This document shows, one piece after another, positions 2,451 through 48,000 of a DNA stretch of 64,000 bases; the stretch's first letter is position 1, and every line of letters starts with the position of its first letter. This DNA is from Blastocladiella emersonii ATCC 22665. Its lineage: Eukaryota > Fungi > Blastocladiomycota. The stretch lies in the NCBI GenBank assembly GCA_025594325.1, contig JANHCV010000014.1:1-64000 (forward strand), given 5' to 3'. The translations under genes and the position numbers were made by a program. The notes under the pieces were generated by a model. That model was given only the letters and a program-made list of their open reading frames with translations, did not search any database and was not told the DNA's origin.

Positions 2451-4949
2451 ATTCTTTTTGCTCCGTGAGCGATTCCGTTACAACAGCTCTCAGAAGCTTA
2501 CAAGTCCAACCGCGACGGCCGCGGGGCGAGGAAAAGCATATCTACACACCTGGCAACGCGGCAAGCAGTTGCGCCACGAAGATCGCGTGGTTGCAACGCA
2601 GTTCTCTATTGACGCGGCGCGACTGACGTGGGGTCAAGTGGCTCTTTGTTGCTTCAGGGCGCACTCGCCGCGCGCTCTGTCCAAATTGCGTCCTATTGGC
2701 GGCGCGACGGCGGACTCACAGTCGCAATCAAGGTAGACAGACGGTCATGGCAGTGGCGCGCGGGTCACGCAATCGGGTGCGCGGGTCGTTCTAGCAGGCG
2801 AGTCATATGCGCGGGCTCACAAGCGCGATAAGTATGTGCGCGCAAGAGCAGCGACACGCCCTCGACCGCGACTGCTGGCGGAGCGATGCCGGCGAGCAAC
2901 GCGGCATCGAACAGCACCGCTGCACCGCCGTCAGCGCTACTCCCGTACGCAACGCGACGAGCACACAGTCCGTCACGCGCTTGGTCGAATCGCGTGCGGG
3001 CGTTGCGCGCACTGATGGGTCAAACGCGGTGGTGAATGGCGCATGCAGGCGGGTGTGACGGGCGCAACGACAGCTGGCGCACGCGGCGGGAAAAGCACAT
3101 GGGCTGGGCGAGCTCGCGTCGCGCGACGGGTGCGCGCGGGAAGATGAACCGCGCGGTCGGTGCGACGGGCACGTGCGCGACAGCGAGCGCGAGCGGGACC
3201 TAGGGCGACGAGAACGTGGTCCTTGTACACGCAACAATGGACCGCGCCCGTGGGCGGTGGAACGAGCGAGCAGGTGGGGCGGACGCGCGGATGGATCGAG
3301 CGCGCAGGCGAACGGGACAAGTGGGCGGGTGAGGCGAGTTCACGGCCGCGATCGCAAGGGACGGCGACGCGACGGGTCCTGGCTGATCGGGTGCAGGGCG
3401 AGCGCGCTTTGTTGCGGCGCAGCGGGCGCGCAACTGCGACCTGCGTGAGCCCCGTCGCGCAGCGCTGTGCGCGCCGCGGGCTCGCACGCCTGGTCGATAT
3501 CAAGCGCGGGCCGCCCGGTCATGGTTGCGTAGACACAGCGGGGAGCGGCAAGAACGAGCGACCCGCCGTCTTGGCGGCGAACGCTGCCACCTTGTCTCAC
3601 GGACGGTTGGCGGATTGCGCCATGTCCCGCACGCGATACTGCCCGCATCCCGCGGTGAGCCGTGTACACGCGGCGACGCACGGTTCCGCCCCGACGCGCA
3701 GGGCCAGCGCCGTGGTCTCATTGGAAGGGCAAAGAAGTTGCAGCAAGAGAGGTCATGTATCATTTGGAACAAGTTGCATGGAGTGTGGTAGCGTTCCAGG
3801 CCAGGGAGGGGGGAGTGGAGAGGGAGAGGGAACGAGGAGCGGCGCGGCCTCGCGTGGCTGCTGATTGAAGTGGCAGGAGCATCTTCGGCTAGTGTTGTGC
3901 GACCCGCTCCCGCCACCGCCTCTCACTGCACCTACTCCAAACCTGTGTGCTCCCTACTCGCCCTCACCTCTCGCAACTTGCTGCAATGCTATCAACCCAG
4001 CATCGCCAACTTGCACTTCGCCCGCACTGTCCTCGCCGCTGCCGCAAGTGAGCCGGCTGCGCCTGGCCCTGACCCCCTCCACCCTCGCTTCTCTCTTCCC
4101 CGAGTCCGCGCCATCACCGCTGGACCGCCACGCCAAGAAGGCCGCCTTCACCGCGCTCACCGCCGTGCTCGCCGACCCGCGTTCACCCGCGCCGTTGTCG
4201 CCGCGTGCCGCCCGCTCGTCCTCGACCTCGTCGCACTCATCGTGCACGCCGCTCCGCAGAACGAGTCGCCCTCCCGCAGCCCCGCCAAGTCAGCTTTCGG
4301 CAAGCGCTACCGGACCGCTCCGCTTTGCGGTGCATCTGAGGATGCCAACGGTACGCTCGCTGCGCGCGCAATCCGCCACATAACTCGTCCCTGACGTCCG
4401 AATTTGGCCCCCTCTCTCTCTAGCCATGGACGTGGATGCCGCGCCGCCGACGGACCTCGTCGCCATGCACCTCCTCGGCAGCGATTCCCCCGGCGCCGTT
4501 GCCCTGTCGCCCGCCGCGCACGCCAACCTCAAAGCCGTCCTCCTCGTCACGCACCGCCTGCTCGCGCACGTCCCCGCGGTCCGCTGCACGCGCTCGTCGA
4601 CTCGCCCGTCCCCATCCTGCGCGCGCGCTGGTTTGTTGCGTACCTCCTCGCCGAGTACTTCGCGGTCGCAGACGCTGAGCATGCGGTGATCGTCTGTGGG
4701 GCGCCCGAAGGCGACGCCTTTTCGCGCTCAAGGACCTCGCCGCCGCTCGTGCCCCACGCGATGCGCATCGCTCCCGCCACCAACCGCCTGGTCGAGCGCT
4801 CCCACATTGCGCAGTGGCGCCCGCTTCTCGCCGCGTGGATGGACTGGCGCGCGTAGAGCCCTGCACTCGCGCCGCTCCGCGTCAGCAGCGACAATCTCGC
4901 GGTGCTCCTCGACCGCATGGTCGCGGCCAATTTGGCCCGCGACAACCAC

Positions 4950-6892
4950 GTGCGTCATCATCACGGCCCGCCGCCGCCTCGAGGAGCGCATTGACGCGCG
5001 CGACGACCAGTTTGAGCACAAGCTGCGCTGTTTCATCGACTCGGCGACGCGGACCAGGCGCGCGCAGGCGACCGGCGACCGCGTCCAGTGCCCCGCCCCG
5101 CCCGACGGCGACGCTGGGGACGGCCCGATCATCACGCGCGAGCCCGACGAGGTCGAGCGCGTCGTCGCCGAGCAGGTCCAGGGCTGGTTCTGCCGGTACG
5201 AGGACTGCGACGGCGGCTGCGACCCCGATGTGCAGCCGCTGCCCGGCCGGTGGCAGGACGCGTTTGCGCCGCTCGAGCACATCAACGACGACGTGTGGGA
5301 CGGGCTCATGGCCGCGCCGACGCACAAGGAGCTCGCCGACGTGCTTGCCGCGTCGGGCAAGGACAAGGCGCCCGGCGGCACCGGGCTCACGGTGCGGCTC
5401 CTCGAGCAGGCCGGCGAGAAGACGCACACGGCGCTGCTCGCCCTGTTCGCGGCGTGCCTGCGCACGCGGTCCGCGCCCGCGTCGTGGAAGACGGGCCTCA
5501 TCTACCTGAACCCCAAGACGAGCGCCGGGTTCACGGGCCTCGCGACCAACTCGCGCCCCATCACGCTGCTCGAGACCGCGTCCAAGGTGCTCATGAAGAT
5601 CCTGCTCGAGCGCATGCACCCGGTCCTGCGCGAGCACGACGTCCTGCAGGGCGCGCGGTACTCGGCGATCCCGGGCACCGACACGACGACGCCAATCGCG
5701 ATCCTGCACGCCGCCGCGCTCAAGGAGCGCAACGAGGACGGTCCGCTCTGGGCCTACTTGGAGGACAAGTCCAAGGCGTTCGACTCGGTGCCGCACGCCC
5801 TGCTCAAGCGCGCCATGCGGCGCATCCGGCTGCCGCCAGAGTTCGTCAACTTCTACTTTGACGGCATGCTGCACGGGCGCACCGCGCGTGCTCACGGCGT
5901 ACGGGCTGTCCGACGAGGTCCGCATCGAGCGCGGGTTCCCGCAGGGCGCCGTCGAGTCGCCGCTGCTGTGGAACCTCTTCTACGACGTGTGCCTGTGCGA
6001 GATCAACCGGCTCACGGTCGAGACGGGCAACGCCGACCACGACGAGGACGCGCGCGGGTTCGGCATCACGCCCGAGGCCGGGTCGGGGCTGCGCCACGTC
6101 GGGCCCAACCGCGGGTTTGCGGCGCCGCCGTTCACGTTTCGCGCGTCGCACCGCCAGCTCGACACGCTCCGCGTCGCCGCCGTCGCCTACATGGACGACG
6201 CCGTCTTCTATGCATCCGACCGCGACCACCTGCAACGCATCGTCGACATTGTGGACGACTTCAACGGGCTCACGCGCATCAACGCGAACCCGGCCAAGGG
6301 TGCGGTCCTCCGCATGCTCTCCAAGTGGGACGACGGCGTGCTCACGGGCGGGCCCAACGACCCGCGGAACGCGCCCATCGTCGTGCGCGGCGTCCCCGTC
6401 CCCTGGGTCGGCAAGTCGTCCCGCTACCTGGGCGTGTTCATTGACCACGCCATGCTCGGCCGCGAAGCAGCCAATACGTGCCTCGCCCTGCTCAAGGACC
6501 GCCGCATCACGGGCAAGGCCGCCGTGTACCTGCTCAACGCCGTCTTCTTCACCGCCGCAGCGTACTGCTCGCTGTTCCGCGTGCCGTCGCTCGCGCAGCT
6601 TGACCGCATTGACCAGTCGGCGCGCGCGCTCGTGCGCCGCAAGTACAAGCTGCCCAACACGTTCCCCACAGCCATGCTGCACGACCGCGACATCATCGGC
6701 CTGCATTCGCTGGCCGACCTGATCACGCAGCAGCACGTCACCGACCTGTGCGTGATGCTCAACGACCCGCGCCCGCACGGCGTGCCTGCGCGCTACGAGC
6801 TTGGCATCCTCCAGTTCCAGACGCAGTGCGCGTTCTCGCCGCTCGAGTGGCCCGACCTCGCGCTCGTGCCCATGTCCAACCAGCTGCCGTGA
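4950..6892 (+). pseudogene. Non-LTR reverse transcriptase domain, frameshifted at ~5888
   Basis: Motifs KAPGGTG, WKTGLIYLNPK, NSRPITLLETASK and DKSKAFDSVPH (ORF 4696..6444 frame); then RGFPQGAVESPLLWNLFYD, AYMDD (6188-6199) and RYLGVF (ORF 5858..6892). Confidence 0.9.
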
Positions 6893-7469: not shown

Positions 7470-8560
7470 TGCCCACCCCGGGCAACGTCGTCCTCGCGTA
7501 CACGGACGGCTCGTACTACGCGGACCGCCCGGGCCCCGAGGGCGTCGCGCGCGCGGGCTCCGCCGCCGTGTTCCCGCTGCCCGACGACTACGACACGGCC
7601 ACGCGCCACGATGCTGATTGCCGCGCGGCCGCCAACGGCGTCACGGACGACGACGTGGGCCACATCGCCGCCGCCAAGCTGCCGCCCGGCCCGTTCTCGT
7701 TGACGCGCGCCGAGATCCAAGCGTTCGTCCTCGCCATGTCGCAAGTCGCCGCCGGGACCGCGCTGCACATCTACTCGGACTCGCAGGCCGCCATCGAGGC
7801 CGCGCGCACGCAGCTCTCGCCGACGGCGACGGTGCGCCAGCGCGTCCGGTGCGCGTCGAGCGACCTGTGGTCCGCGCTCCGCCTCGCGCTGCGCGACCGC
7901 AACGTCAAGGTCACCTTCTCGTGGGTCCGCGGCCACGCTGACGACCCGACCACGCCCAACAACGCCGCCGACTGCGCCGCCAAGGCCGCGGCGAACCAGC
8001 CGTCCGCCACCGACGCGTACTTTTCGAAACGCACGCGCACCGAGTCGGACCTCCACCACGTTCCAGCCTGTTTCGACCACGAGATTGGCGGCGACTCGCG
8101 CAAGTTCATGCGCGACCTCGCGCAGGCCGACGCGGTGCTCGCCGAGAACGTGGCGCACCTCGCGCTCGCGCAGCCGCCGCCGCCCGAGCCCGTACCCACC
8201 AACGCCGCTGCAGCCGCCGCTGTAGCAGCTGCGAACGCCGCCGCCGCCCAGGCCGAGGAGCTCGACTGGGAGGCGACCGCGCTCGCGCCCCACGGCGGGT
8301 CGCGCCCACTCGTGCGCCGCACCTCGCGCGACCAGAACAAGGAGACGTTGTTCCGCCTGCGCGCGCTCGCCAACAAGCTGCCGTGCCGCGAGTCGCTGCA
8401 CTCGGTCGGCCGCATCGCTGTGCCCACCTGCGGCAGGGCCAAGTGCGCCGCCGAGCCGAACCCCAAGGCCCGCTGCATCCAGTGCTGGGACGCCGACTTC
8501 AAGGCATCTCGGTGCTCGTGCGGCCTGCAGGATACGCCGTTCCACTGGTTCCAGTGCAAG
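7470..8560 (+). pseudogene. RNase H domain plus Cys/His motif of the retroelement
   Basis: AYTDGS (D at 7505), TRAEIQA, IYSDSQAAI, WVRGH and NNAADCAAK give the RNase H acidic residues. LPCRESL...CSCGLQDTPFHWFQC is a typical LINE C-terminal motif. Confidence 0.88.
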
Positions 8561-11500
8561 CTCGTGGACGAGCAGCGCGTCGAGACGCTCAACCAGATCT
8601 CCGAGTCGTGGCTCAGCCAGCTCACGTCTGTCGGCGCGGCCAAGCACGACGCCGCCCTGAACCCCGCCGCCGGCACGCTGATCGACGCGCTGCTCGGCCC
8701 TGACCTGCTGCACGTCATGCACCTCGACGTCAACACGCTGCGCGCCGACCGCGACGCAGCGTTCGCGACCCGCGTCGCGGCGATCCCTGCCTGGGCGATC
8801 GCGCGCCGCGACGTAAAGGAGGCTGGTCTGTCGATCCCGGGCGAGGACGCGCTGCCGCCGCTTCTCGACCTGCCCGATGCCGCCGCAATTCGCCTGTTCT
8901 CCCGCGCCATCACGCGTGGCGCGGTGCACGCGCGCCGCGAGTTCCTGGGCAGCCTGGCCGCCGCCGCCGCCGCGATCGCGCTCCACCCGCTCCCGTCCCC
9001 GCACCACCTCGAGGTCAAGGGTATTCGCGGCCCCGCCCTGCGGAAGCCCATGCTCACCTGGTTCGCCCGCGGCCACGCGGCCCGCGAGTTCATTACAGCC
9101 GCCGTCGCGCCTGCCTGCATGCTCCACCACGGGCTCGACGCCGACGACGCCGACGACGCCGTCATGAGCGGGTTCGCCGCCGTCCCCGCCGAGCTCGTCA
9201 AAGAGGGTCAAGTCGTCCCGCACCCGCCGCTGCTCCTGCACCACTCGTCGTGCCACTGTACCCGCTCCTCGGCGCGCTCGAGGCCGGCATGGCCGCCGCG
9301 ATGCTCGATTCCGCGGTTTTGGGGGACGCCCACGCCGCGCTCCCCGTCCTCCTGTGGGCGTGGTCCATGTGGTCGCAGTGCCTCGTGCAGCACTAGCTCA
9401 ACCTGCAGCTCGACCTCACCGCGCTCTAGCGCGACCTCGTCGCCGCCTGCATGCACCTGCTGCGCAACGTGCCCGCGACGTGCCCACGACGCGGATCGCG
9501 AGCGCGACCGAGATTGTCTCGACCGCGACGTCGAACCTTGAGCAGCTCGGGCTCGCCTGGATCCACCTCGGGCTCGCGTTCATGGAGCCACCACTACATG
9601 CGCCAGCTGCAGGGCACCTCGTGCTCGAGCTGCAGGTGCACCTCGCGCTGCAGATCCGCGACAACGACGTGTCCACCAACCCGACCATCGAGTGGCTCCG
9701 CGCGCGCCTCGCAGCGGTCCCGAGCCGCTGCTGCCCATCATCACCCAGAAGAGCGACGCGCTGTCCCACAACCAGAACACGCCCGACCTCCCCACGCCCA
9801 CCACGTCCGCGTTCGGCCACGCGCTCCACCACTACCCGGAGCCGTGCGCCACGCAGCTCGCCGCCGCGCGCGCGTACCGCGACGCTCGACTCGGCCCGAT
9901 CCTGTCCCGGTTGGTGCAGCTCGCGTGCGTCGCCGAGGTCCCGCTCCCGCTCGCCGAGCTCATGGCGGAGCTCACCATGCACGAGGCGTCGACTCTGCTG
10001 CAGGTGCGCAAGAAGGCGTTGGCCGACCCAAGCACTTCCGCGACATGGGCCTGTCGTGGCGCCACGCACACATCCCCGTGTCCGAGGACGTGGTCGTGCT
10101 GCCGCCCATCGCCGCGCGTCGCCTTCAAGCCGCTCGTCAACGAGGTGACCGTCTACCACCTCCGCTTCGTCGCGCTCATAACGACGACGGCCAAGGTGCT
10201 CAGGAAACGCTCGCACGCCATCCAGCACAACCAGGTCGAACGCGCCGTCGGGTACGCCGCCGACCTGTACAAGCTCGTCGTCACGGAACGCCGCGCGTTC
10301 GCGCCGGTCATCGCCCTCGTCGCGGACCTCGACGCGCTCACGGCCGTCGACGCCCCTTCGGGCCACTGGACCGCGGACCCCGCCATCGTCCGCGAGCTCC
10401 TCGCGCTCAGCTCCATCGTGCTCGTCACCAAGCTCGTCCTCGCGCTCGACCTGCGCACTCCGCGCGCCGCGCCCGCCGTAAACGGCGCTCCGCGACGCCG
10501 GCACCGACTTCCTCGGCCGCTTCCGCGCCGCGTACCCGAGCGATACGGAAGCGGTGTCTGTCCTCAACGCGGCCCTCACGCGCGAGTGGTTCGCGGCCAA
10601 GGCCCCCGCCTGCGCTGAACTCGAGTCGCACGCGCGCATAGCGGCCCCGTTTCTACTTTATGTCGACCGTCCTCGCTTTCTGATCAACTTCGTTGACACG
10701 AGTTGAGCACAAGCCTAAAACTCGGGACAGCGGCAGGTCGTGATCGAAGTTTGGCGGCAGTCTCTTCGCTCGGACGCTCGCTCCCCCCGAGAATCTGACT
10801 ACACCGTACCGTTCGCCGGCGTCCTTCGCGACGCGCTCGATGCCACCGACGCAAAACTCGAGTACCAGTGCGCTACCATGCTCAAGCTCTATGACGACGC
10901 GTTTCCCGTCCCCCACGTCGCACTCTTCTGTCCGCCGCACGCGCATGAGCCAAGCTGCCAGTTCTCGCGCCACCCGTTCACGACCACGGGCCACGCGAAA
11001 CGCCCGCCCGAGCGCATAAATGTCGCCGTTGCCACGATCAAGCCCGTACGGCTCGTCAGGCCGTGCCCGTTCTCCACCCCACGCAGCTACCGTGGCCTTT
11101 TGCTTAAATGCATGCGGTCTTGGGGCAAATATGAGCATTCAGCTTCGTCACGGAACCTACTTGGACACGGGCAGGAGGCAAACCGCGCGAATCCGGCTCG
11201 CCGTCGGCACGCACGCGCGAGGTGAGCGTGAGTACGCTGAGCAACGGACGCATCCTAAGGCCTCGCTCGGGCCGCGCGGCAAAAGCGTGAATCAACAACG
11301 CGGTCCGGCGGGTGCACGCGCACGTCAAGGGCGACGATCCAAGGGGTTCCCGCCGCCGTGGCCGCCAGTTGAGCGAGGCGGCAGCATCCATGCTCTCGCG
11401 AAGCAGCAAGCCGCCCGCCAGCTGGGCTAGGCTACGAAAGCGCGAGGTCATAAAGCAGCAGGTGCGAAAGGCAGCGCGGCAAGGCGCGGCCGACGAGCAG

Positions 11501-15924: not shown

Positions 15925-17034
15925 ATGACCGAACTCTCGCCGCCCGCCTCTGCCGGGGCAACGGCTGCCGTCACGTCGCAGCCCGTCACCTCGCAGCCCG
16001 TCGTGACGCAGCTCCCCGACACCCCGCTCGCGCTCGGCCCCGCGCCCGCCCCGCCCGGCGGCCCCTACTCGGCCGTGATCCACCCGGCGCTGCCGCACCT
16101 GCACCGCCCGACCGCCGTCCCGGACCTCGCCCGCTCCGCCACCCTCCTCCCGCACGAACCTTGTGCCCTGGTCCAGGCACCCGACGGCGGCGCCGCTCCG
16201 CGCCTCGTCCACGCCGCACTGCGCAAGATCCTGCCCCACGCCATCGAGAACACCACCCGCGTGCGCATCTGGATCGCTCACGACGCCGACCACGTCGTCC
16301 GCCTGCACGTCTTCCGCCGCGGCCTGCTGCTGCCCGGCGAGGGCGCCTGCGCGCCCGCCGATGGTGGTAACGATGATGACGACGACCGCGAGCCGCCGCC
16401 GCCCTACGCGACCATTGCGCGCGGCGGGCCCGCCACCCTCGCCCGCTCCACCTCGGCCGCCGCCATCCCCGTCGCCTCCGTGTGGACCCGCGCCGCCGCC
16501 ACCGCCACCCTGTACCGCTCCGCCGACGGCGGCGTCCCCGACGGCAGCGTGCGCCTCGGCGTCGTCGCCTTCCGCCTCGACAAGGACCGCGACGACGGGC
16601 TCGCCATCGACGACGCCGCTCCCGCCCCCGCGTACGGCGAGGACCCGCCGTGCCCCGTCCACGTTGTGCGGCCCGACGACCTCCTGCCGCTGCGCAAGTG
16701 GGTGCGCCGCGTCGTTGGCGGGATCCCGGAGCCCGAGGAGGGCGGGCCTGCGCCGCAGCCAGGCTACCACCGCCACCGACCCCACTCGTCCTCATCGTCG
16801 TGTTCGTCGTGCTGCCTCGACTGCTGCTGCGGCGGCCGCTCCGGCACCGCCTGCACCATCTGGGACTGCCTCTTGTGCGTCGACTGCTGCATCCACCTGC
16901 CCAACTGCCTCCTCGGGTGCTTTGCCATCTTTGCCCAGCTGTGCGAGTTCACCGGCGACTGCATCACGGGCTTCTGCGCCGTGTGCGGCGCCTGTGCCGA
17001 GTGCGGGGCGTGCGACTGCGGCGGCTTTGTCTAG
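15925..17034 (+). CDS. Unknown protein with PPPPY motif and very Cys-rich C-terminal tail
   Basis: Single ORF with host-like GC3 bias; 21 Cys in the last ~75 residues; PY motif (EPPPPY). Confidence 0.75.
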   Translation: MTELSPPASAGATAAVTSQPVTSQPVVTQLPDTPLALGPAPAPPGGPYSAVIHPALPHLHRPTAVPDLARSATLLPHEPCALVQAPDGGAAPRLVHAALRKILPHAIENTTRVRIWIAHDADHVVRLHVFRRGLLLPGEGACAPADGGNDDDDDREPPPPYATIARGGPATLARSTSAAAIPVASVWTRAAATATLYRSADGGVPDGSVRLGVVAFRLDKDRDDGLAIDDAAPAPAYGEDPPCPVHVVRPDDLLPLRKWVRRVVGGIPEPEEGGPAPQPGYHRHRPHSSSSSCSSCCLDCCCGGRSGTACTIWDCLLCVDCCIHLPNCLLGCFAIFAQLCEFTGDCITGFCAVCGACAECGACDCGGFV

Positions 17035-17118
17035 AACCCGTTTAGAACCCACCATTTTTGTGATCCTCTACCCCGACTGACAGCTGTATATATGCTCTTC
17101 CTCCGTCCCCGTGTTTCC

Positions 17119-19337
17119 TCACCTCGTCGTGGTCATGGTTCCGGCGTCCGCGCTCGTGGCACGCACGGGTGGACTCGGCAGCGGTTCGAGGTCGCACCCG
17201 CCGTCCTCGTCCTCCCCATCGTCGTCCTCGGCCGCCGGTGCGAGCGGCAGCGCGTGTACCGCGTCCATGGCCGCCTCGAGCAGCGCCGTATCGAGCGGGC
17301 CCGGGTCGCCTACACTCGCCGTCAGGATCAGCACCCCGCTCTCCCAGTGCGCGAGCAAGTAACGTACCTCGCGTGGCGGCCTCGTCGAGACACGCAGCCA
17401 TCTCGTCGGCGTGCGCGAGCGAGAGCCACTTGGCCGCCGCGCCCGGGTCAGCGACGGCGACCGCGTTGAGCACGAGCTTGCTCCACGCGTCAAGCAGCCG
17501 CTGGTGGCCTTCCTGGACCGCCACCGTGAGAATGTCGACGAGCCTACACTCCCACCGCGAGTCAGCGACCACCACGGTACAGTAACCGCGAATCGAACGC
17601 GTACGAGTCAGCCGGGATCCGCGACACCACGCCCGCCCCGCCGTCCCCGCCCACGAGGTTGATCCACACGCCGCACAGGGGCAGGAGCACGTCGCCGCAC
17701 ACGCTCTCGAGCATGGCGACGAGCAGGTCCATCCAGTCGCGCGACCCGCGCATCGTGTGCTGCACGTGCGGGTCGCGCGCGAGGTTGGCCGCGACGCCGA
17801 GCGCCTCGGCCTGAGCTTCGGCGTGGTCGGACCGCAGCAGCACGTCGGCGAGCGCGGCGAGGAGCGCGGCCTGGTCCGCGTCAGTGCCGGCGGGCGGGCA
17901 GTAGTAGGACAGGTTGTTGAGGAGGAGGAGCGCGTTGAGCTCGAGGTCCTCGCCGTCGCGCGCGAGCACCGCGTCGTTGGCCGGGTGTGAGAGCAGCGGG
18001 ACCAGGACCGCCAGGCGCGCGTCGTGGGCGTGCGCGGCGCCGATGGGGCGCGACTGGAGCAAGTTGGCGAACAGGCGGATTGTCTACGTGGTCGCGCGGG
18101 GGTCAGCGGGACTGCGAGGCGGGGGATCGCGAGCGAGCAAGTGTGCCTTGATGAGAACGCCGACCTGCTGCACCCCGTCGCCGGCGAGGTACGCCTCGGC
18201 CGCGTTTGCGAGCGCGGCAACGACGGGCCCGACGCTGCCTGCGACCGCGTCATGCACGGGTCCCACGTCGACGGACACCTCGCCGAGCGCGTACAGGAGG
18301 CGCTCGGCGACGGCGGGCCGCGTGGCCGGGTGGACGGCAAGGAGGACGGCGCGGTCGAGGTCCGCCGCGTCCCACTGCGCGGCGAGCGACTTGGGGTTGG
18401 CCGAGGCGAGGGCAGCGACGATGCGCGCCGTGTGCAGTGCGAGGGCGTGGTGCGCGTCGCTGGGCGCCGCAGTCTCTGCCGAAATCCATGCGAGCACGAG
18501 GTCGAGGGCGCGGCCGACCATGCGCAGTCCGCCGCGGGCAACGAGGTCGGCGGCGTGGCGCGGGAGCAGGTCGCGCAGCACCAGGGCGCACCGCGCGGCC
18601 TCGTCGAGGTGCGGACCCGCGAGCAGCGGGGAGGCCGAGGTGACGAGCGAGCGCAGGGCGAGGTCAAAGTCGCACATGGTGCGCGGGAGGGACACGTCGC
18701 CGAGATCGCCGGCCGAGGTCGGCAGCGACGACGAGCTGGTGCGCGAGATGGCCGAGTCGGCGCGTGACAGCGGGCGTGACACCGAGGAGGTGCCGCCGGG
18801 CGGGGTCGGGCGGCGCGGCGCGTCGAGGGCGAGCGATGACGACGCGGACCGGGCGAGCGGCGGCGGCGGGCCCTGGCCCGCGGGTCCCACGGTAGCTAGC
18901 GGCGCGAGCTTCCGCGGCGGGGTCGGGGTGGCCGAGAGGGTGCGCAGGGCGGCGGGGGTCAGCGGGCGGGTGCCGCCGAGGAGCGAGCGGGGCGGGGTCG
19001 CCGTGTTGCGCACGGTGGTGCCCGGCGGGCGCGGACCGGTTGGTGGGAGCGGCGGCGGGAGCGGGGCGTGCGGGCCAGTGGAGTCGTTGGGCGAGGAGTG
19101 CAGCAGCAGGTCGCGCCACACGGCGGGGGTGATGGGCCGGATCGGGCGCTTGAGCGAGGGCCGGCCGGCCGGGTCGTCGCGCAGCGGGGAGCGCGCGGGC
19201 GGCGGGCGCGGCGCGTGGAGGGGTCTAGACGCGGACCCGGACCCGTCCAGGCTTGGGAGGAGGGCGGAGGGGCCGGTTGGTGGCGGCGAGTGCGCGGCCG
19301 CGTGGATGGGCGGCAGCATGGTGGACTGCGGGTGCAT
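17119..19337 (-). CDS. ARMC2: Armadillo-repeat protein, ARMC2-like (ciliary), 3 exons
   Basis: LIK|TIRLFANL, LLNNLSYY (17901-17918), ALGVAANLAR and LCGVWINL match recalled ARMC2 motifs. Introns ~18146-18084 and 17604-17544; Pro/Ser-rich N-terminus. Confidence 0.7.
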
Positions 19338-40398: not shown

Positions 40399-40658
40399 TT
40401 GTTTTCTGTCCGAGCCATGTATTTTGTTATCACGTACCGACTAGGGACGGAGAGCAGGGCGGAGAGGTGAAGGGTCCGAGTGCGGGGCTTTGCCCAAGCA
40501 ATCCCTCCGAGGCATAGCGTGCCGAAGCGACGCGTTGTTCATTTGAGCCTCGAGCACGTGGATGATCCGGTGGCGCTGACTCGAACGGGTGGGCCGGCGT
40601 CGGCGCGGAAAAGCTGCCCCGCGGTCCGCCAGTGGTCCTCGCTCTCCCCAACAACTCC

Positions 40659-41954
40659 ATGCATTCAATGAACGACGACTCAACTCCGGCCCCGCCCAAG
40701 GTGACGCTCGACGACCTGCCGCTCGTCGCGCTCGAGAACATCCTGGCGCGGTGCACGCCGCGGGACGTGCTGACCGTGTCGCGCCTGTCGCGCAAGTGGC
40801 ACACGATGCTGTCGAGCGCCGACGAGGAGCTGTGGAACGGTCTCCTTCGCGCGCACGCGTCGCGGTTCGCCCACGTCGTCCTCGCCCGCGCGCGCCGGCT
40901 GCAGCTCGACACCGTGACGCCGCGCGACCTGTACTTTGCGACCGTGTGCCGGGCCGAGATCCACGCGTGGGGCCAGATGGCGTGCGAGGCCGAGTGGCGC
41001 AACCCGGGCCACGTCCCTGTCGCCCTCGACGCGCCCGACGGCGTGCAAGAGCCGATTACGCAGATCGCCATGGGCGGGACCGCGCTGTACGTGGTCTACG
41101 GCGACGGCACGCTCGCGGCGCTCGGGCGCGTCCTCGAGTACGCGGGCCGGCGCCGCGACGAGCTCACGGTCATCCGCCGCGACGTGCGGCGCGTGGTCCC
41201 CGCGCGGTACGGCGTGGCGATCCTGACCAAGGCCGGGAAGTGGGTCCGGTCCGAGGTGCGCAACAACGAGCAGCAGGAGGAGAAGGAGTACCGGCCGCGC
41301 TGGACGGGGCACCAGGAGGAGAGCAGTGACGAGGAAGAGGAGGACGACGAGCTCGGGCCCACGTCGCTCGTTGTCGGGTCCGGCTGGGAGTGGATCGTCA
41401 CGTACGACGCCAAAACCAAGATGCTCGTCGCGTCGCGCAACGGGACCGAGGTCAAGTGCACGTTCCCGCACCCCGGCGTCCGGTTCGTCGGCAACACCGA
41501 GGATGACGTGGTCGTCGCCACGGCGACGCACGTCTACCAGCGCGCGATCCATCCCGCCGCCGAGTCGGACCCGTGGCGCGAGCTGTTCGCCGTCACCACC
41601 ACGGGCCCGCGCGAGGCGATTGTCGAGCTCAACTGCTTTTACCGCACCATCGGGCTCCGCACCACGCGGCGCGCGCTGTTCCTCGAGCCGGGCAACCCGG
41701 TCCCGCGCGAGCTCCCCGCGGGCGTGTGCAGCCTCGCGACGGGCGACTGGCACCACGGGTTCATCACCGACGACGGGTCCGTGCACACGTGGGGCGCGTA
41801 CTCGGACGGCGCCAACGGCTGCGAGCGTGGCGCCGTCCAGGAGCCCGAGCCCATGGCGTGCTTCGAGCAGGACCGCACCAAGGCCGTGATCCACCTCGCT
41901 ATGGGCGGGTGGTCGTCAGTCGCGCTGGTGGTCCCACTGGGCCCGGTTTCTTGA
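40659..41954 (+). CDS. F-box protein with RCC1-like repeats (Saf1-like)
   Basis: LDDLPLVALENILARC..DVLTVSRLSRKW (F-box); ITQIAMGG, CSLATGDWHHGFITDDGSVHTWG and VIHLAMGGWSSVAL (RCC1-like). Confidence 0.82.
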   Translation: MHSMNDDSTPAPPKVTLDDLPLVALENILARCTPRDVLTVSRLSRKWHTMLSSADEELWNGLLRAHASRFAHVVLARARRLQLDTVTPRDLYFATVCRAEIHAWGQMACEAEWRNPGHVPVALDAPDGVQEPITQIAMGGTALYVVYGDGTLAALGRVLEYAGRRRDELTVIRRDVRRVVPARYGVAILTKAGKWVRSEVRNNEQQEEKEYRPRWTGHQEESSDEEEEDDELGPTSLVVGSGWEWIVTYDAKTKMLVASRNGTEVKCTFPHPGVRFVGNTEDDVVVATATHVYQRAIHPAAESDPWRELFAVTTTGPREAIVELNCFYRTIGLRTTRRALFLEPGNPVPRELPAGVCSLATGDWHHGFITDDGSVHTWGAYSDGANGCERGAVQEPEPMACFEQDRTKAVIHLAMGGWSSVALVVPLGPVS

Positions 41955-42087: not shown

Positions 42088-42330
42088 ATGCAGACGATAG
42101 AAAACTGCGAGGGGGAAGTGCAACCAGAGCGCGCTGCGACCCTTATAGACCTGCCGCTCGTCGCGCTGGAGAACATCCTCGCGCGGTGCGCACCACGAGA
42201 TGTCCTCGCTGGCGCGCGAAGCTCTCAAGCACCGACGCCGATCTCTGGCACGGCCTGCTTCATGCCCATGCGCCGCGATACGCGCCCGTCGTCCTGAGCC
42301 GCGGGCGCCAGCTCAAACTTCCCTCGCCGC
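42088..42330 (+). pseudogene. Truncated, frameshifted duplicate of the adjacent F-box gene
   Basis: DLPLVALENILARCAPRDVL is nearly identical to the paralog. A ~22-nt deletion follows, then WRAKLSSTDADLWHGLLHAHA..VVLSRGRQLKL in another frame; homology stops at ~42322. Confidence 0.85.
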
Positions 42331-42564
42331 CCGCGAAAACGCGCACAATAGGCAGACCGAGCTCGTCCAGGAGACGCTCGCGGAAGTCAAGCTCGCGCTC
42401 GCCCTCGCCGAGGGCGCCCGCGACGACACCCTGCGCGAGCGCGACGCCGCGCACGAGCAGATCGAGCAGCTCGTCTTGCCGCGGCTCATCGACCTTGCCC
42501 CTGACCTTGCTCGCGACACCTTCCTCACGGCGCAGCCGAACCTTCTACGCGTCGTCACGAAAAG

Positions 42565-44805
42565 ATGTATAAGTCGGTTGCCCGCAAGGGCCACGAGGTC
42601 ACGGTCACATACCGCCTCGCCCAGGTCCTCGCCAGCACGGACCGCGGCCCCGGTAGCCACTACGACCTGATCCGCGACGCCGTGCGGCGCGAGTCCGAGA
42701 TCCTGGCCGAGACTGCGGCCATGGCGCCCTTCTACCTCGACCTCATCAAGGACGAGCCCGACCTCAAGTTCGACCAGGGCGTGATCCGCATCATGTTCAA
42801 CGCCGTGAGCCACTCCAACTCGGTAAGGACCGGGCGGCCGTCCACGGGTCGCGAGGCCGAGTTCGTCAAGCGCGCCTACGAGATCTACGCGGCGTCAGCT
42901 CGCCCAGCCGGTCGGCCCAAGCCGTCGCGCGACCGCCTCGGTCCTGCCCTCGATTTCGCTGCTGCGTCGTACTGGAACTCGGTCCGCCACACGGGCAAGA
43001 AGATGGTGATCAAGTTCATTGGCGACCTGGCCGAGGCGCTGTCTCAGACGCGCGCCGTCAAGGGCATGTCGCAGTCCTCGGTCTCGGGTCTCGGCCGCGG
43101 GTTCAAGAAGAAGTCGGCGCGCAACCGCGACTGGTACATGGAGCTGCAGCAGGTCAAGGCCGACGCCGACGTGTACCGCGACCGCGACGAGCAGCCGTTT
43201 AGGCGCATGCAGCGGCTCGTCGACCTGGCCAAGCGCGACTTTGAGAACGGCCGCACCCTCCACCTCGTCGAGCCGCCGTCGCTCATCCCCATGCTCGGTG
43301 TCCGCCGCCGCACCATCGGCCTCGACATGACGTCGCTGCGCTGCGTCATCCACCTGCCCGAGGTTAAGGCGCCGCCCGAGGAGAAGGCCGCGCGCAGCGC
43401 CCGCATCAGCGCTGCGCACTGGGACCATCCCATCGAGGCCCTCGACGGCGTGCTCAAGCCCAAGATCCTGCGCGACGGCGACGACAAGAACAAGTACCAC
43501 GGCCTCATGTACATGGACGGCTACCTCGCCCGCGTCGTCTACGTCAAGGGTGGTGTGCGCGTCAAGAAGGGCCACGGCAACAAGGCGTCGGCCAACGGCG
43601 GGTCTGACAACGGGGAGGCGTCGGCGGCGACCTCGGCCAAGGGCACCTTCCTGCGCTACAACAACTCGGGCAAGGCCATCTACTCGAAGCCGTCGCGCAA
43701 GCAGTCGTCCAACACGTCGGCCACCACGTTGGCCTCGTCGTTGCCGCCGGCACCGCCCGGCCCGCGCGCCGAGCTCAAGGTCCACTCGCTCAAGACGATC
43801 CACATCCCCGAGGGCAAGTACACGGTCTGGATGGACCCCGGCGAGGACGACATCTTCACGGCGCTCAGCGTCGACCCCGAGCTGTTCGAGGCTCACGCTG
43901 AGCTCATGCGCCTCGTGCTCCAGGCCGCCGAGCTCGAGCAGGAGGCCGAGTCGCTCAAGGCCAAGCTCACCGACGCCGAGCTCAAGCGCAGGTCCAGGTC
44001 GTCGGTGTCGTCGTCGTCGGTCGAGTCGCCCAACGTCAAGATCATGCCCGAGGTCGCAAAGATTGCCCGCGAGGTCGTGTCGTCGGTCGTCCTCGAGAAG
44101 TCGCTGTCCCACTCGGTCTCGTCCAAGACGTACCACCACCAGACGCTGCACGACAAGATGATCGAGCGTCGCGCCATGTGGCGCGAGGAGGCGGGCATGC
44201 CCGAGGAGGACCTCAAGCAGTCGCTCGCCGCTCGTGGCGACCCCAAGAAGTCGACTGGTCGTGACTACATCACCCAGGCCAAGGCGCTCGTCGAGAGCCT
44301 CGACAAGCGTTTCGCCGAGGAGTTCCACGACCGCCTGCCGCGCATGCGGTTCATGGTCGAGGCCCGCGAGCGCAGGTGGTGGTCCGAGCTCGCGTACTCG
44401 CTGCGCGACGCGGTCGTCATGGTCGGGTGCAACCTTCACGGTTTCGGCATGGTCTCGTCCAAGCTGAAAGCGCCCGTCAAGACCATGATCCGCGAGCTGC
44501 GCGCCGCCGGCATCCCCGTGTACCTGGTCGAGGAGAACTACTCGTCCAAGTGGTGCGCGGCGTGCTTCTTCGCCGACCCTACGGCCGACGACGAGACCTT
44601 CAACCTCACGGGCAAGTCGTACAAGACGCGGACGTGCCGCACGTGCGGCGTTCGGGTCCAGCGGGACCGCAACGCCGCGGTCAACATCTTCGGGTTCGCG
44701 CTCGGCCACTACCACTTTGTCCGCGTTGCGCCTCAGCCCAAGTCCACGTCGTCGTCGTCGTCGCTGCCGCAGGTCTCGCCCTCCTCACCGTCGACCTCGT
44801 CCTGA
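42565..44805 (+). CDS. Fanzor1 / TnpB-like RNA-guided endonuclease (746 aa)
   Basis: RuvC-I WMDPGEDDIF (D424, nt 43834), RuvC-II VYLVEENYSSK (E657, nt 44533), zinc finger C664/C667/C691/C694 and RuvC-III RDRNAAVNI (D701, nt 44665). Fanzor1-like WED motifs TIGLDMTSL and MYMDGYLARVVY lie upstream. Confidence 0.9.
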   Translation: MYKSVARKGHEVTVTYRLAQVLASTDRGPGSHYDLIRDAVRRESEILAETAAMAPFYLDLIKDEPDLKFDQGVIRIMFNAVSHSNSVRTGRPSTGREAEFVKRAYEIYAASARPAGRPKPSRDRLGPALDFAAASYWNSVRHTGKKMVIKFIGDLAEALSQTRAVKGMSQSSVSGLGRGFKKKSARNRDWYMELQQVKADADVYRDRDEQPFRRMQRLVDLAKRDFENGRTLHLVEPPSLIPMLGVRRRTIGLDMTSLRCVIHLPEVKAPPEEKAARSARISAAHWDHPIEALDGVLKPKILRDGDDKNKYHGLMYMDGYLARVVYVKGGVRVKKGHGNKASANGGSDNGEASAATSAKGTFLRYNNSGKAIYSKPSRKQSSNTSATTLASSLPPAPPGPRAELKVHSLKTIHIPEGKYTVWMDPGEDDIFTALSVDPELFEAHAELMRLVLQAAELEQEAESLKAKLTDAELKRRSRSSVSSSSVESPNVKIMPEVAKIAREVVSSVVLEKSLSHSVSSKTYHHQTLHDKMIERRAMWREEAGMPEEDLKQSLAARGDPKKSTGRDYITQAKALVESLDKRFAEEFHDRLPRMRFMVEARERRWWSELAYSLRDAVVMVGCNLHGFGMVSSKLKAPVKTMIRELRAAGIPVYLVEENYSSKWCAACFFADPTADDETFNLTGKSYKTRTCRTCGVRVQRDRNAAVNIFGFALGHYHFVRVAPQPKSTSSSSSLPQVSPSSPSTSS

Positions 44806-44829
44806 TCTGCCGCCGCCACCACCACCATC

Positions 44830-45030
44830 ACCACCGTCTCTACGGTTTCTTCACGCGCACGTATCCGCAATCGATGCAGCGCGTACGGTCTCGGGTGCGC
44901 CAAGTCCCCCATGTGTGGAAAGCGCCCGCGACGCAAGGGCCTTTTGAGGCCGCGCGTCCTGACCACCGGGTGTGGTCGCCTCGCACCCAACGCGGTGTCT
45001 GGCGTCCGCTCGTCTGTTCACTTCTTTAAG
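44830..45030 (+). ncRNA. Candidate Fanzor omegaRNA scaffold / element right end
   Basis: Stacked hairpins at 44833-44846, 44853-44884, 44930-44958 and 44961-44977, plus a long-range GGGTGCG(44893-99)/CGCACCC(44982-88) stem, directly 3' of the Fanzor stop. The ends are uncertain. Confidence 0.55.
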
Positions 45031-45099
45031 GAGTTGAGTATTGTGTTCTGTGTGTTGTTCATACTTGGAATACGAAAAGATGTATTATACTTATCCATC

Positions 45100-48000
45100 T
45101 TATCCATATCCACCGCTGATGGGCGCGGCGACGGCGGCGTGTGGTGGCGACGTCTCGCGCGACCTGCTGGCCGCCGCGCCGGCATCGTCAAAGACAAACG
45201 CCTCGAGCTGCTCGATGACCTGGGCGTACATGGGCGATGCGGGCCTGCGCTTAGCGAGTGCGGCGGCCGCGAGGCCCGGGACCGCGGCTGGCTTGGTGCC
45301 GGGCGGGGGCGACGGGAGCGGGATGTACGGCGGTGCCTGGTCCCTGACGCGGGCGAGGACGCGGTAGACGGCCGCGGCCGTGTCGGGTCCGGGGGCGACG
45401 TGGTACAGCGCGCCGAGGGCCTTGCTGGTGACCATGGCGAGGGTATCGACGACGTCGTGGTGGAGGACGCCGGGCCGGGCGAGCGCAGGGCAGAACCGTG
45501 CGATGCGCGCGGCCGTGACGAGCAGCGACTCGAGGCGCGGCGACACGGACTCGGCGCGGGCCTCGGCGACTTGCGCAGCGGCCGCCGCGATGCGCGGGAG
45601 CACGCGCTGGCGGACGTGCCGCGACAGCGACTCGGCAAAGTCGAACCCCTGGTACGTCGCGACCATCTCGGCCGCCGCGTACAGGTACTCGTCCCACGCG
45701 CCGAGCCGCTCGAGCGCGTACAGGTACGTCCGCAGCACCGTCGCCGACACGCTGCGCACGCCGCGCAGCAGGTCCGCGATCTTGGTCGCGCGCTGCAGCG
45801 GGTCCAGGGTCTCGTCGCCGTCGTCGTCAGCCGAGGTGCCAATGACGAGCTGGACATGCAGCGCGGTGCGCAGCATCGGGACCACGAGCGCCGGGTTGCC
45901 GAGCAGCGACGCGCTCGCGGCCTGCGCGCGCGCCTTGGCGTCCGACACGGCGCGGCGCGCGTCGTCGACCGACTTCCACCGCGGCATTACGGGCGGGTGG
46001 AGTTTCTGGTCGGTCTCGGGCAGCGTGACGGCCGAGTCTTCCTTGCGCGGCGACGCGGACGCCGAGTGCCGCCGCCCGCCATCAAACGACTTGCGGCGGA
46101 CGAGGTGCGACACGGCGTTGGCGGCCTTCTCCATGGCCGACCCGGCGCGCTCCTGCAGGGCGTGCTGGCGCGCGGACAGCGCCTCAATGCCGGTCCCGAG
46201 CGCGCCGCTGATACTCGGTTTTCCGCGGCGGTGCCCGCTCGCGCTGCCCGTGGGCGACGGCGACTTGGCGGCGGGTCCCGCATCCACGAGCGCGCGGATC
46301 TCGCGGCGTCGTTCCTCGTCGAGCGCCGGGTCCTCGTCGTAGACGGTCGGGAACAGGAGCCAGTGGACGAGCGTGGTCCACTCGCCGTGCAGGGGCTCGC
46401 CGGCGTGTCTCGCGCGCGCCGCCTGCCACTCGACGAGGTGCAGGCCGAGCTCGAGGCCCTCCGTGTACTGGTGCTTGAGGACCAGCAGGCACAGGTTGCG
46501 CAGCGCGGCCGGCGACGGCTGGAACAGGTCGAGGTCGAGCGCGAGCAGCAGCGGCGGCACCACGCGGCGGGCTTGGACTGCGTCGCGCAGCTCGAGGACC
46601 CGCGCCAGCTCGTGCTCGACGTCGCCCACGGGGATCGGCGGTGCGGGCTCTTCTTCAGGTTCCTCGTCGACTTGCTCTGGGATAGACGGCGCGACCGAGG
46701 CCCCGCCCGCCGACGTGCACGACACGGCCGACGCGGACCGCGACCGGCGGCCGCCGAGCTGCTGCTCGAGGACGGACCCGAGCGGCGTCGCGACGTTGAG
46801 CGACCCCCACCGCCCGCGCGACCCGCCCGCAAGCCCGAGGAACCGGCACGTTGACATGGGCAGCGTGAGGGTGCGCGCGGTACCGGACGCCAGGACCACT
46901 TCGACAGCGGGGCTCGCGACCGCGCTGTCCTGGCTGAGCATCGACGACGCGCCGGTGGTGCTCGCGTGCGCAGCGCCGTTCCCGCCGAGCGCGGTCGTGG
47001 TCGCGAACAGCCGCGTGACGGTTGCCGGCGGCCGCCGCGACCCGCTCGACCCCATAGCTGACGCCGCGAGACTCCCACACGGGACGGCGCCGTCGGGCCC
47101 GACCGCCGTGACATGCACCGCCGTGTAATCCGCCGTCGCGACGAGTCCCGGCGCGAGCAGCGCGACGTGCGCGACACGGTGCGTGTGCGGCGGGCTAAAC
47201 TCAACGACCGGGTGGGTGGGCGCGCGGAGGTCCCACTCGGCGACTGCGTCGCCGCCCGTCCATAGCGTGTGCGAGGATGCGGACCACAGCAGCGTCTCGA
47301 CGGCGTCGCCGCTGCGACCAATGGACGGCGCGGACACGTCGTCGTACCGCGACGGCGCGCGCGTACGCGGGTCCCACAGCCGGACGACGGGCGCGCCGCA
47401 CGTGTCGAGCGCGCGCGCCGTGTACGCGAACACGGCCGACGCGGGGTGCATCGCCGACGCGCCCGCGGCGTTCGGGAGCGTCCATCGGCGCCGCTGGCGT
47501 GTGAGGTCCCACGCGTCGAGGGCGCGCGATGATGGGATGTACACCGTGGCGAGGGCCAGGTTGTCGGGCATGACGGTCGGCGAGACGAGGCGGGTTTCCT
47601 CGTACTACACGCCGTAGTCGTTAGCGCGGCATGCGAGTTTGCGGCATCGGAAAGCGTACCGTGTCGTCGGGCAACACGGCCGTGTACTCGCCCGCCGCCT
47701 CGCCCTCGACCACGATGCGGTACACCTGCCCGCGTCCCGTCACGAGCACCTCGCTCGCGCCGACGGCCGCGACGCCGAACGAGGGCGACGGGAGCGTGAT
47801 CGCCGTCTGCGCCATGGCCAGCGACCCATTCCCACTACTGCTGCTCGCCTCGTCGCTCTGCGCCGCTGGCCGCGACATGACGTACACGTTATGCCGGAGC
47901 GAGGCGCACGTCGCGACACGGGTCGTTCCCAAAACGCACGCGTCGGTGATCCACGCGGCGGGATCGTCCCACGACCCGTGCACGCTCCACGCGGTGCCCG

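Follow-up and report, generated by a model that had tools for sequence, protein, structure and literature searches.

A Fanzor1-type open reading frame on a probable decaying mobile element of the fungus Blastocladiella emersonii

The DNA analyzed here, called the window in the following, is a stretch of 64,000 nucleotides (nt) of Blastocladiella emersonii ATCC 22665 (GenBank assembly GCA_025594325.1, contig JANHCV010000014.1, positions 1 to 64,000). Its positions 42565-44805 hold an uninterrupted open reading frame (ORF) of 746 codons on the plus strand, which encodes a protein of the Fanzor1 type according to domain, motif and fold evidence. In all probability this ORF for an RNA-guided nuclease is carried by a decaying, non-autonomous mobile element that is present in multiple copies, the one in the window being the best preserved, and the start codon was taken from the target DNA. 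An initial annotation, made from the letters alone, had described the same ORF, which we reproduced exactly, as an intact Fanzor1 nuclease that is either a recent non-autonomous copy or a stationary, domesticated gene.

Identity of the encoded protein

The sole Pfam domain in the product of the ORF is PF07282 (Cas12f1-like TNB), located at residues 645-708 with an E-value of 4.5e-10 and 40 bits compared to a gathering score of 26.3. Weak matches to the NCBIfam models guided_TnpB, Cas12f2, IS607_TnpB and IS200_TnpB occur in the C-terminal part. A phmmer search of the product against the PDB sequences gave no meaningful match; only the profile of the family reached TnpB, Cas12f and Fanzor proteins, matching chains of TnpB, Cas12f, LaTranC, SpuFz1, PpFz1 and mimivirus Fanzor2 with E-values from 4e-6 to 1e-3, the SpuFz1 match being the longest. 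The possibility of a chance ORF in GC-rich DNA was considered and is ruled out by the domain and fold matches.

Residue conservation was read from an alignment of the window ORF with 13 relatives (14 sequences). The three RuvC acidic residues named in the initial annotation, D424, E657 and D701, are present and conserved: E657 (in VEENYSSK) is invariant, and D424 (in WMDPG, residues 422-426), G621, V655, C664, C667, C691, C694, D701 and N703 are nearly so, the last two being part of RDRNAAVNI. The four cysteines correspond to the CxxC..CxxC finger that had been noticed between RuvC-II and RuvC-III. The earlier spacings hold as well, with about 105 residues, including a Ser/Gly-rich stretch, between the MDG motif (residues 317-319) and D424, and with 233 residues, formerly given as about 230, between D424 and E657.

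Three of these motifs can be compared with published Fanzor features. The DPG motif, present here at RuvC-I, is a signature of Fanzors and pro-Fanzors (PMC10711439). Judged by its motif position, G621 would be an inert residue at the canonical site of the RuvC-II Glu, ending the strand where canonical TnpBs carry Glu, and the invariant E657 follows 36 residues downstream, directly before YSSK-CxxC; a relocated (rearranged) RuvC-II Glu has been described for Fanzors (PMC10530073). The TDG motif in the WED domain is a Fanzor1 hallmark (PMC10711439). The consensus of the family at this site is TDGY, and TDG is found in two further copies of the element, L001 and L002, introduced below. The statement that the WED motifs fit Fanzor1 is therefore correct for the family, but the MDG of the window copy is a private variant (T317M). 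The positions are:

43513-43515, plus strand: codon 317 (ATG, Met), T317M in the TDG motif of WED; ACG (Thr) in L001 and L002
43834-43836, plus strand: RuvC-I catalytic Asp D424 in the DPG motif, nearly invariant in the alignment
44497-44688, plus strand: Cas12f1-like TNB/zinc-ribbon (residues 645-708) including the four Cys; PF07282, E-value 4.5e-10
44533-44535, plus strand: alternative (relocated) RuvC-II Glu E657, invariant in the alignment
44665-44667, plus strand: RuvC-III Asp D701, nearly invariant in the alignment

An AlphaFold2 model, built on the shallow alignment of 14 sequences, is confident at residues ~395-720, with a predicted local distance difference test (pLDDT) of 75-92, and poor over most of the first ~390 residues. 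It contains long paired helices at 438-476 and 493-510, after RuvC-I; helical insertions in RuvC (REC2), next to large REC parts, are a feature of Fanzor1. When the model was searched against the PDB with Foldseek, the first seven ranks were all Fanzor1 (SpuFz1 with an E-value of 3.9e-6, PpFz1 and GtFz1), above Cas12f, TnpB and Fanzor2. The top five matches of VIA-align were likewise all Fanzor1, led by SpuFz1 with Z 13.8 (model residues 247-718 compared to chain residues 271-623) and including PpFz1 with Z 12.1; Fanzor2 (9b0l) reached Z 10.1 and ISDra2 TnpB Z 9.7. Clusters of the same fold in the AlphaFold database consist of uncharacterized eukaryotic proteins, several of them annotated with a TNB domain.

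The profile and structure searches that the initial annotation had proposed thus yield a TNB domain above the gathering score and matches of the RuvC type with SpuFz1 as the best one. PF07282, motifs, family profile, Foldseek and VIA-align all favor Fanzor1, in agreement with the original call. The features of the TnpB/Fanzor/Cas12 RuvC superfamily, namely a split RuvC domain, a D-E-D triad and a zinc ribbon between RuvC-II and RuvC-III, are found in the protein, at fold Z-scores of 9-14. Fanzor2 proteins are compact (~500 residues) and usually belong to elements of the IS607 type with a TnpA serine recombinase; the window protein has 746 residues, its fold match to Fanzor2 ranks below those to Fanzor1, and no recombinase gene was seen nearby.

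Only about nine codons lie between the start of the element-derived coding sequence and the first strand predicted for WED (VTVTYRL), a spacing like that at the N-terminus of P0012, a metagenomic relative. A BLASTP comparison of the N-terminus with P0012 was not significant, and the argument for a complete N-terminus consists of the MAFFT placement and the spacing alone. As a separate observation, language-model features of residues 1-400 (42565-43764) are nearest to DUF8286 (PF26935) clusters of Nucleocytoviricota and Mucoromycota, with a score of 0.93 and 153 shared features. No DUF8286 match in this part was found in the Pfam scan of the protein; the DUF8286-like stretch may be the N-terminal region of Fanzor1.

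Insertion site, target-site duplication and related copies

The same exact 14-nt direct repeat (ACGAAAAGATGTAT) is found at both junctions of the element, at 42557-42570 and at 45072-45085. A match of 12 nt or longer occurs in only 0.24% of random pairs of 65-nt zones from the window. The 3' repeat begins with AC, which is also the shared terminus of the element, and the length of the duplication is therefore 12-14 bp. The ATG of the ORF (42565) is located inside the 5' repeat, which means that codons 1-2 are target DNA, that the element starts from codon 3, and that its native start, leader and promoter are absent. In the 5' direction the reading frame is ended by an in-frame TGA at 42502-42504, 60 nt upstream of the ATG. 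No terminal inverted repeats were found at the boundaries of the element. The layout is as follows:

42557-42570, plus strand: 5' copy of the target-site duplication ACGAAAAGATGTAT, holding the ATG of the ORF (42565-42567); the exact 14-mer recurs at 45072-45085
42571-45073, plus strand: body of the inserted Fanzor1 element, ~2.5 kb, without terminal inverted repeats, delimited by direct repeats, shared 3' end and depth profile
42565-44805, plus strand: open 746-codon ORF of Fanzor1 type; codons 1-2 target DNA, codons 3-746 element
45072-45085, plus strand: 3' copy of the target-site duplication, exact repeat; its first two bases AC are the terminal AC of the element

Three other loci of B. 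emersonii, L001 (JANHCV010000011.1), L002 and L003, were compared with the window at the DNA level, and the family has at least four copies including that of the window. L001 matches window positions 42658-45073 with 93% identity, L002 matches 43166-44930 with 92%, and L003 matches 44017-45073 with 96%. The window, L001 and L003 agree through ...CATACTTGGAATAC (window ~45073) and then diverge completely. The 5' ends differ in every copy, and the flanks of the copies are mutually unrelated. We also considered whether the truncated copies have 5' flanks in common or are preceded by pieces of the tail, and rejected this, since the resemblances at CGTGA and GTTGTTCATA do not exceed the background.

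A further hint towards nested truncation arises from unitigs of three DNA runs, which bridge both junctions of the element. Their depth, as a rough proxy for copy number only, sums in run X1 to ~25 before 42646, 36-57 up to 43251, 73-149 over 43373-44582 and 159-295 over 44583-45066, and falls to 14-23 after 45067; loose ends of unitigs mark extra break points, e.g. at 44619. The shape of this profile agrees with a nested truncation of the 5' ends.

Neither a serine recombinase nor another transposase, TnpA included, was seen within the loci examined. Carriage by eukaryotic transposons other than IS607, a feature of Fanzor1, corresponds to what is found here: multiple copies, flanking by a duplication and no recombinase in these loci.

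Two observations concern the surroundings of the other copies. The L001 copy (L001:7939-10400) is located in the 3.15-kb spacer of an inverted duplication at L001:6011-12823, whose arms of 1.85 kb are 97.5% identical and contain one Peptidase_S8 gene each; the boundaries of the inverted duplication differ from the ends of the Fanzor copy. A 3' flank resembling that of L003 (AACTAACCCAAGCG...TATCCGTATCCG; L003:9037-9080 and loose ends at window position 45073) occurs in at least one additional copy, which points to either a segmental duplication of the L003 locus or repeated insertion into a repeated target.

Substitution pattern and decay

Differences between the window copy and the other copies are spread evenly over the three codon positions, with 28/32/31 differences compared to L001 and 42/26/25 compared to L002. 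We polarized the changes with 3-4 copies over 43170-44802. Those that occur in the window copy only comprise 7 synonymous and 18 non-synonymous changes, over 397 and 1238 sites, respectively, giving a synonymous rate (dS) of 0.018, a non-synonymous rate (dN) of 0.015 and a ratio of ~0.8. The synonymous share is 28%, compared to ~62% predicted at a dN/dS of 0.2. The substitutions of the window copy match the neutral expectation, and the dN/dS calculation suggested by the initial annotation hence reveals no purifying selection on this copy's own lineage.

An open frame is compatible with such drift. In a frame this rich in GC, a stop results from only 3.6% of all possible substitutions; for the ORF as a whole ~34 private changes are expected, and after so many the frame stays open in roughly 30% of cases. 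The window copy also carries two lesions in the coding sequence. T317M arises from a private C>T change at 43514 (ACG to ATG); Thr is kept at this position by L001, by L002 and by most of the distant paralogs. In comparison with L001 and L002, 30 nt are deleted in frame:

43372-43373, plus strand: site of the 30-nt in-frame deletion (10 codons) compared to L001 and L002

The other copies are damaged more severely. The damage consists of two stops, a 1-nt deletion and a change in the zinc-finger region in L001, and of a 2-nt deletion and C667Y in the zinc finger in L002; judged by their sequences, both copies are plainly dead. The description of the window copy as intact is correct as far as the open frame and the presence of the catalytic residues are concerned, but its start codon is target DNA, its native 5' end is absent and its TDG motif carries T317M. 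We additionally report that transitions dominate the differences between copies, with, e.g., 24 of the 30 changes private to the window copy and 56 of the 67 private to L002. Such an excess fits decay of the deamination type in a genome rich in GC.

The 3' tail as candidate omegaRNA source

Downstream of the ORF the element continues with a non-coding tail of 268 nt, which is 95-97% identical among the copies, the same as the coding part. A tail that is as conserved as the coding region gives no indication of extra constraint. Folding of the whole tail was no more stable than that of shuffled sequences (z -0.73). The terminal 149 nt (44925-45073), forming four stem-loops, gave a z of -2.35, and 4 of 200 shuffles were as good. 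In the terminal hairpin the pairing is kept (U-A/U-G) by two of the three L001 substitutions and by the single L003 substitution; the third L001 change breaks a pair. A search of the tail against Rfam returned sub-threshold chance matches only, and no 3' tail common to distant Fanzor subfamilies was found.

It is a reasonable inference from Fanzor biology, and not a finding, that the tail could be the source of an omegaRNA. The omegaRNA of SpuFz1 combines a scaffold of 75 nt with a guide of 15 nt, located at the right end (PMC10432273). By analogy, the flank at 45074-45090 would be the place where a guide is read. The corresponding features are:

44806-45073, plus strand: non-coding 3' tail, candidate omegaRNA scaffold, putative function
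45043-45073, plus strand: terminal hairpin predicted by folding, ending at the final base of the element
45074-45090, plus strand: flank past the right end, putative guide position by analogy with SpuFz1

Nature of the locus

The observations can be arranged to a course of events. An element of ~2.5 kb without terminal inverted repeats would have inserted in the 3' flank of a host gene, making the 12-14-bp duplication. The family may spread, or may once have spread, in a one-ended manner, with the 3' end always copied and the copying stopped at variable 5' points. The window copy would be the longest survivor, having lost only its native start and 5' leader, and an in-frame ATG would have been gained by accident from the duplicated target, followed by neutral drift. 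The open frame and the D424/E657/D701 triad are then explained by youth and luck and not by selection. If the locus is transcribed, the protein could bind an RNA from the 3' tail with the adjoining flank as guide, and could cut matching DNA next to a target-adjacent motif (TAM), as SpuFz1 does.

While we regard a decaying mobile element as very probable, one must keep in mind what weighs against it. A clear target-site duplication was found at the window copy only and at none of L001, L002 and L003. Neither a full-length master copy nor an autonomous partner was found among the loci examined, a genome-wide search for a partner sharing the terminus not having been made. The polarization of the private changes leans on just 3-4 copies, and the unitig depth has the coarseness mentioned above. 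In the structural model the N-terminal ~300 residues have a pLDDT under 50, and the completeness of WED and REC rests on motif spacing, not on the fold.

A still functional copy, of which both protein and 3' RNA would be expressed as an active RNA-guided nuclease, e.g. cutting the unoccupied target site and thereby promoting homing, is improbable. The intact D-E-D triad and zinc finger, which distinguish the window from the broken copies, the z of -2.35 of the terminal 149 nt with a hairpin at the very end, and the start of element coding ~9 codons before the first WED strand with a P0012-like spacing are arguments for such a function. They are opposed by the missing native start and promoter with an accidental ATG in their place, by the neutral drift, by T317M in a conserved WED motif together with the loss of 10 codons, and by a whole tail that is not unusually stable. 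In addition, a Helitron2-borne Fanzor1 of Chlamydomonas had no detectable cleavage in vitro (PMC10530073).

A domesticated, stationary host nuclease, i.e. a single functional gene that is under selection and no longer mobile, hardly comes into consideration: 746 open codons, intact catalytic residues, a host-like GC content at third codon positions (GC3) and the lack of a transposase or inverted repeats nearby would suit it, but the start codon is supplied by a flanking target-site duplication, at least three paralogous copies of 92-96% identity show nested 5' truncations, dN/dS is ~0.8 with a synonymous share of 28% and not ~62%, the TDG motif has a private change, 10 codons are deleted, and the product is absent from the database proteins of the B. 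emersonii genome. What was found is neither a single fixed locus, nor purifying selection, nor freedom from transposon hallmarks. The domesticated alternative of the initial annotation is thus contradicted by the 14-nt duplication, the 5'-truncated, frameshifted copies with a common 3' end and the neutral substitutions. Its other alternative, a recent non-autonomous copy, is essentially right, with the correction that the copy is 5'-incomplete and drifting.

Potential mechanisms of mobilization

If the family is regarded as a mobile element, the 5' truncation, fixed 3' end and 12-14-bp duplication fit the Helitron2-borne Fanzor1 of Chlamydomonas and a retroposition of the type of long interspersed nuclear elements (LINEs) equally well. 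The mobilizing enzyme could act in trans as a rolling-circle transposase of the Helitron2 type with one-ended transposition, as proposed for the Chlamydomonas families CRe-1, 2 and 3, a possibility to which we give somewhat less than an even chance. The fixed 3' end, the 5' truncation, the duplication and the lack of terminal inverted repeats represent the CRe syndrome (PMC3627910), and a subterminal and a terminal hairpin at the 3' end point in the same direction. Non-autonomous Helitron2 elements are characterized by termini in common with a RepHel-encoding Helitron, by asymmetric terminal inverted repeats and by a 3' hairpin, of which the 3' hairpin was observed here. The target is not T-rich, in contrast to those of CRe; the 3' tail is not common to other Fanzor subfamilies; and the terminal hairpin uses G-U pairs, which suit RNA better than DNA.

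Target-primed reverse transcription classically leaves this combination of 5' truncation, a constant 3' end and a duplication of 12-14 bp. Mobilization via RNA, with transcripts being reverse-transcribed at nicked targets by the machinery of a retrotransposon without long terminal repeats (non-LTR), would account for these three traits and is a tentative, rather unlikely explanation. The 2-nt microhomology (AC) between target and element end, the A-rich start of the duplication (GAAAAG) and the intron-less ORF are in favor of it, as is the reported association of the Fanzor1c clade with LINEs (PMC10530073). This is opposed by the absence of a poly(A) or simple-repeat tail at the 3' end of any copy, by the observation of one duplication only, and by the fact that no LINE sharing the tail was identified, with a genome-wide search for terminus-sharing partners not made. 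The remaining probability belongs to some other mechanism.

A narrower version of retroposition, which we consider doubtful, is that the RNA intermediate by which the family spreads also carries the omegaRNA and is copied into new sites by the reverse transcriptase of a non-LTR retrotransposon. This would explain 5'-truncated, duplication-flanked copies without inverted repeats or introns. If true, it would represent a retro-mobilized RNA-guided nuclease in which each new copy gains a new guide from its new flank.

Genomic neighborhood

The GC content of the window is ~70%, and the GC3 of the ORF is 0.93, compared to 0.94 and 0.91 in two neighboring genes, which corroborates the host-like GC3 stated initially. 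The flanking genes are an F-box/RCC1-like gene (40632-41954) and a gene for an 823-residue protein (45100-47571), for which no Pfam match was found. Among the neighboring genes no transposase lies beside the ORF; together with the lack of inverted repeats at the element ends this agrees with the earlier remark that no transposase or terminal inverted repeat is visible nearby. The 746-residue product itself is absent from the B. emersonii proteins in the searched databases.

The gene for the 823-residue protein is convergent and has its stop codon at 45100-45102 on the minus strand; only ~15 nt separate this codon from the insertion. The insertion presumably lies within the 3' untranslated region of this gene, whose transcripts would run antisense into the Fanzor tail. 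On the other side, the F-box N-terminus encoded by the F-box/RCC1-like gene (40632-41954) has a partial, frame-broken duplicate with ~70% identity at 42149-42314, which belongs to the flank upstream of the insertion and is outside the element. A loss of the Fanzor N-terminus by a -1 frameshift into this duplicate is not supported, as the junction is the boundary of an insertion. At the 3' end of the F-box/RCC1-like gene, 41806-41942 has a unitig depth of 4-5 times that of its flanks with loose ends on both sides, pointing to a short segment that is repeated or to a conserved domain of a family that occurs in several copies.

Range of the family

The proteins closest to the ORF product are annotated as hypothetical and come from B. 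emersonii ATCC 22665. When 1.84 billion cluster representatives were searched exhaustively with phmmer, only 18 relatives were returned, 17 from B. emersonii and one metagenomic protein, which are 28-96% identical over the matched stretches; they comprise the ORF's own subfamily and several others at 28-46%. Nine out of ten relatives tested have PF07282 above the gathering score. A profile search of a set of 5.8 billion proteins found two close paralogs only. As judged from these sequences, the family is a lineage-restricted and very divergent Fanzor1 radiation in B. emersonii. Blastocladiella is not named in Fanzor catalogues, within their searchable text and supplements.

With respect to transposases beside the distant paralogs, just one weak Plavaka match was found, and the other paralogs are situated amid ordinary genes. 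The match belongs to the locus L004 (coordinates listed: 4301-5527, 8157-9422 and 16577-17473), where two divergent genes of the Fanzor-like kind are oriented oppositely to each other, their products having 40% and 34% identity to the window protein. The gene with the weak Pfam match to Plavaka (KDZ/CACTA-type transposase) is located ~2.5 kb upstream of the first of them.

Significance

Fanzor1 is already well known, also from the same phylum, and the behavior of the element has a published precedent in Chlamydomonas. With the present family, the known range of Fanzor1 is extended by a very divergent radiation that is restricted to one lineage. After Chlamydomonas it is the second case, independent of the first, in which Fanzor1 elements multiply with a fixed 3' end, 5' truncation and duplications of variable length, a pattern that bears on the open question of how transposase-less, Fanzor-only elements move. 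For the mining of tools, the window copy is the best template in its subfamily and is not a wild type, given its accidental N-terminus, T317M and the 10-codon deletion. As a practical warning, in a genome with 70% GC an ORF that is long, free of interruptions and complete in its catalytic residues says little about selection.

Comparison with known systems

The best structural match to the window protein, over WED, RuvC and NUC, is SpuFz1 of Spizellomyces punctatus (PDB 8GKH, 9CEY), whose host, like B. emersonii, is an early-diverging fungus. SpuFz1 has N-terminal WED residues near 21-25, REC at 96-270, WED at 291-345 and the catalytic residues D383/E541/D606 (PMC10432273), to which D424/E657/D701 of the window protein correspond. 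Both proteins share the order of N-terminal WED strand, REC, WED, RuvC-I, helical insertion, relocated RuvC-II Glu, CCCC zinc finger and RuvC-III, although their identity is only ~11-17%. With 746 compared to ~630 residues the window protein is longer; it has 233 instead of 158 residues between RuvC-I and RuvC-II and contains Ser-rich low-complexity inserts. In the SpuFz1 elements either end carries a conserved inverted repeat, whereas the window element has none and its copies are 5'-truncated.

With ISDra2 TnpB and Cas12f the window protein has the core of RuvC and zinc ribbon (TNB) in common, as reflected by a fold Z of 9-10 and the weak C-terminal NCBIfam matches. TnpB and Cas12f carry Glu at the canonical RuvC-II site, where the window protein has Gly and a relocated Glu. 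It also differs by a much larger REC/WED part and by its eukaryotic host.

The closest parallel to the behavior of the element is provided by the Chlamydomonas reinhardtii Fanzor1 families CRe-1, 2 and 3, for which 5' truncation, intact 3' ends and duplications of 7-19 bp were reported (Bao & Jurka 2013, PMC3627910). They were assigned to non-autonomous Helitron2 elements with one-ended transposition (PMC3627910), and the association of Chlamydomonas Fanzor1 with Helitron2 was confirmed by Jiang et al. (PMC10530073). CRe-1, 2, 3/CrFNuc and the window element agree in being Fanzor1-only, non-autonomous and 5'-truncated (most copies in the case of CRe) with fixed 3' ends, and in having a conserved 3' non-coding region. 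There are also differences: the CRe genes have 5-10 introns compared to none in the window ORF, CRe targets follow TTTT and the window target does not, the CRe termini were matched to bona fide Helitrons, and the CRe families with 35-150 loci have far more copies than the family of B. emersonii.

Within the same phylum, Blastocladiomycota, three Fanzor1 families (AMa) were reported for Allomyces macrogynus (PMC3627910). Because phmmer gave no relative outside B. emersonii except for one metagenomic protein, the Blastocladiella clade is at least very divergent from AMa.

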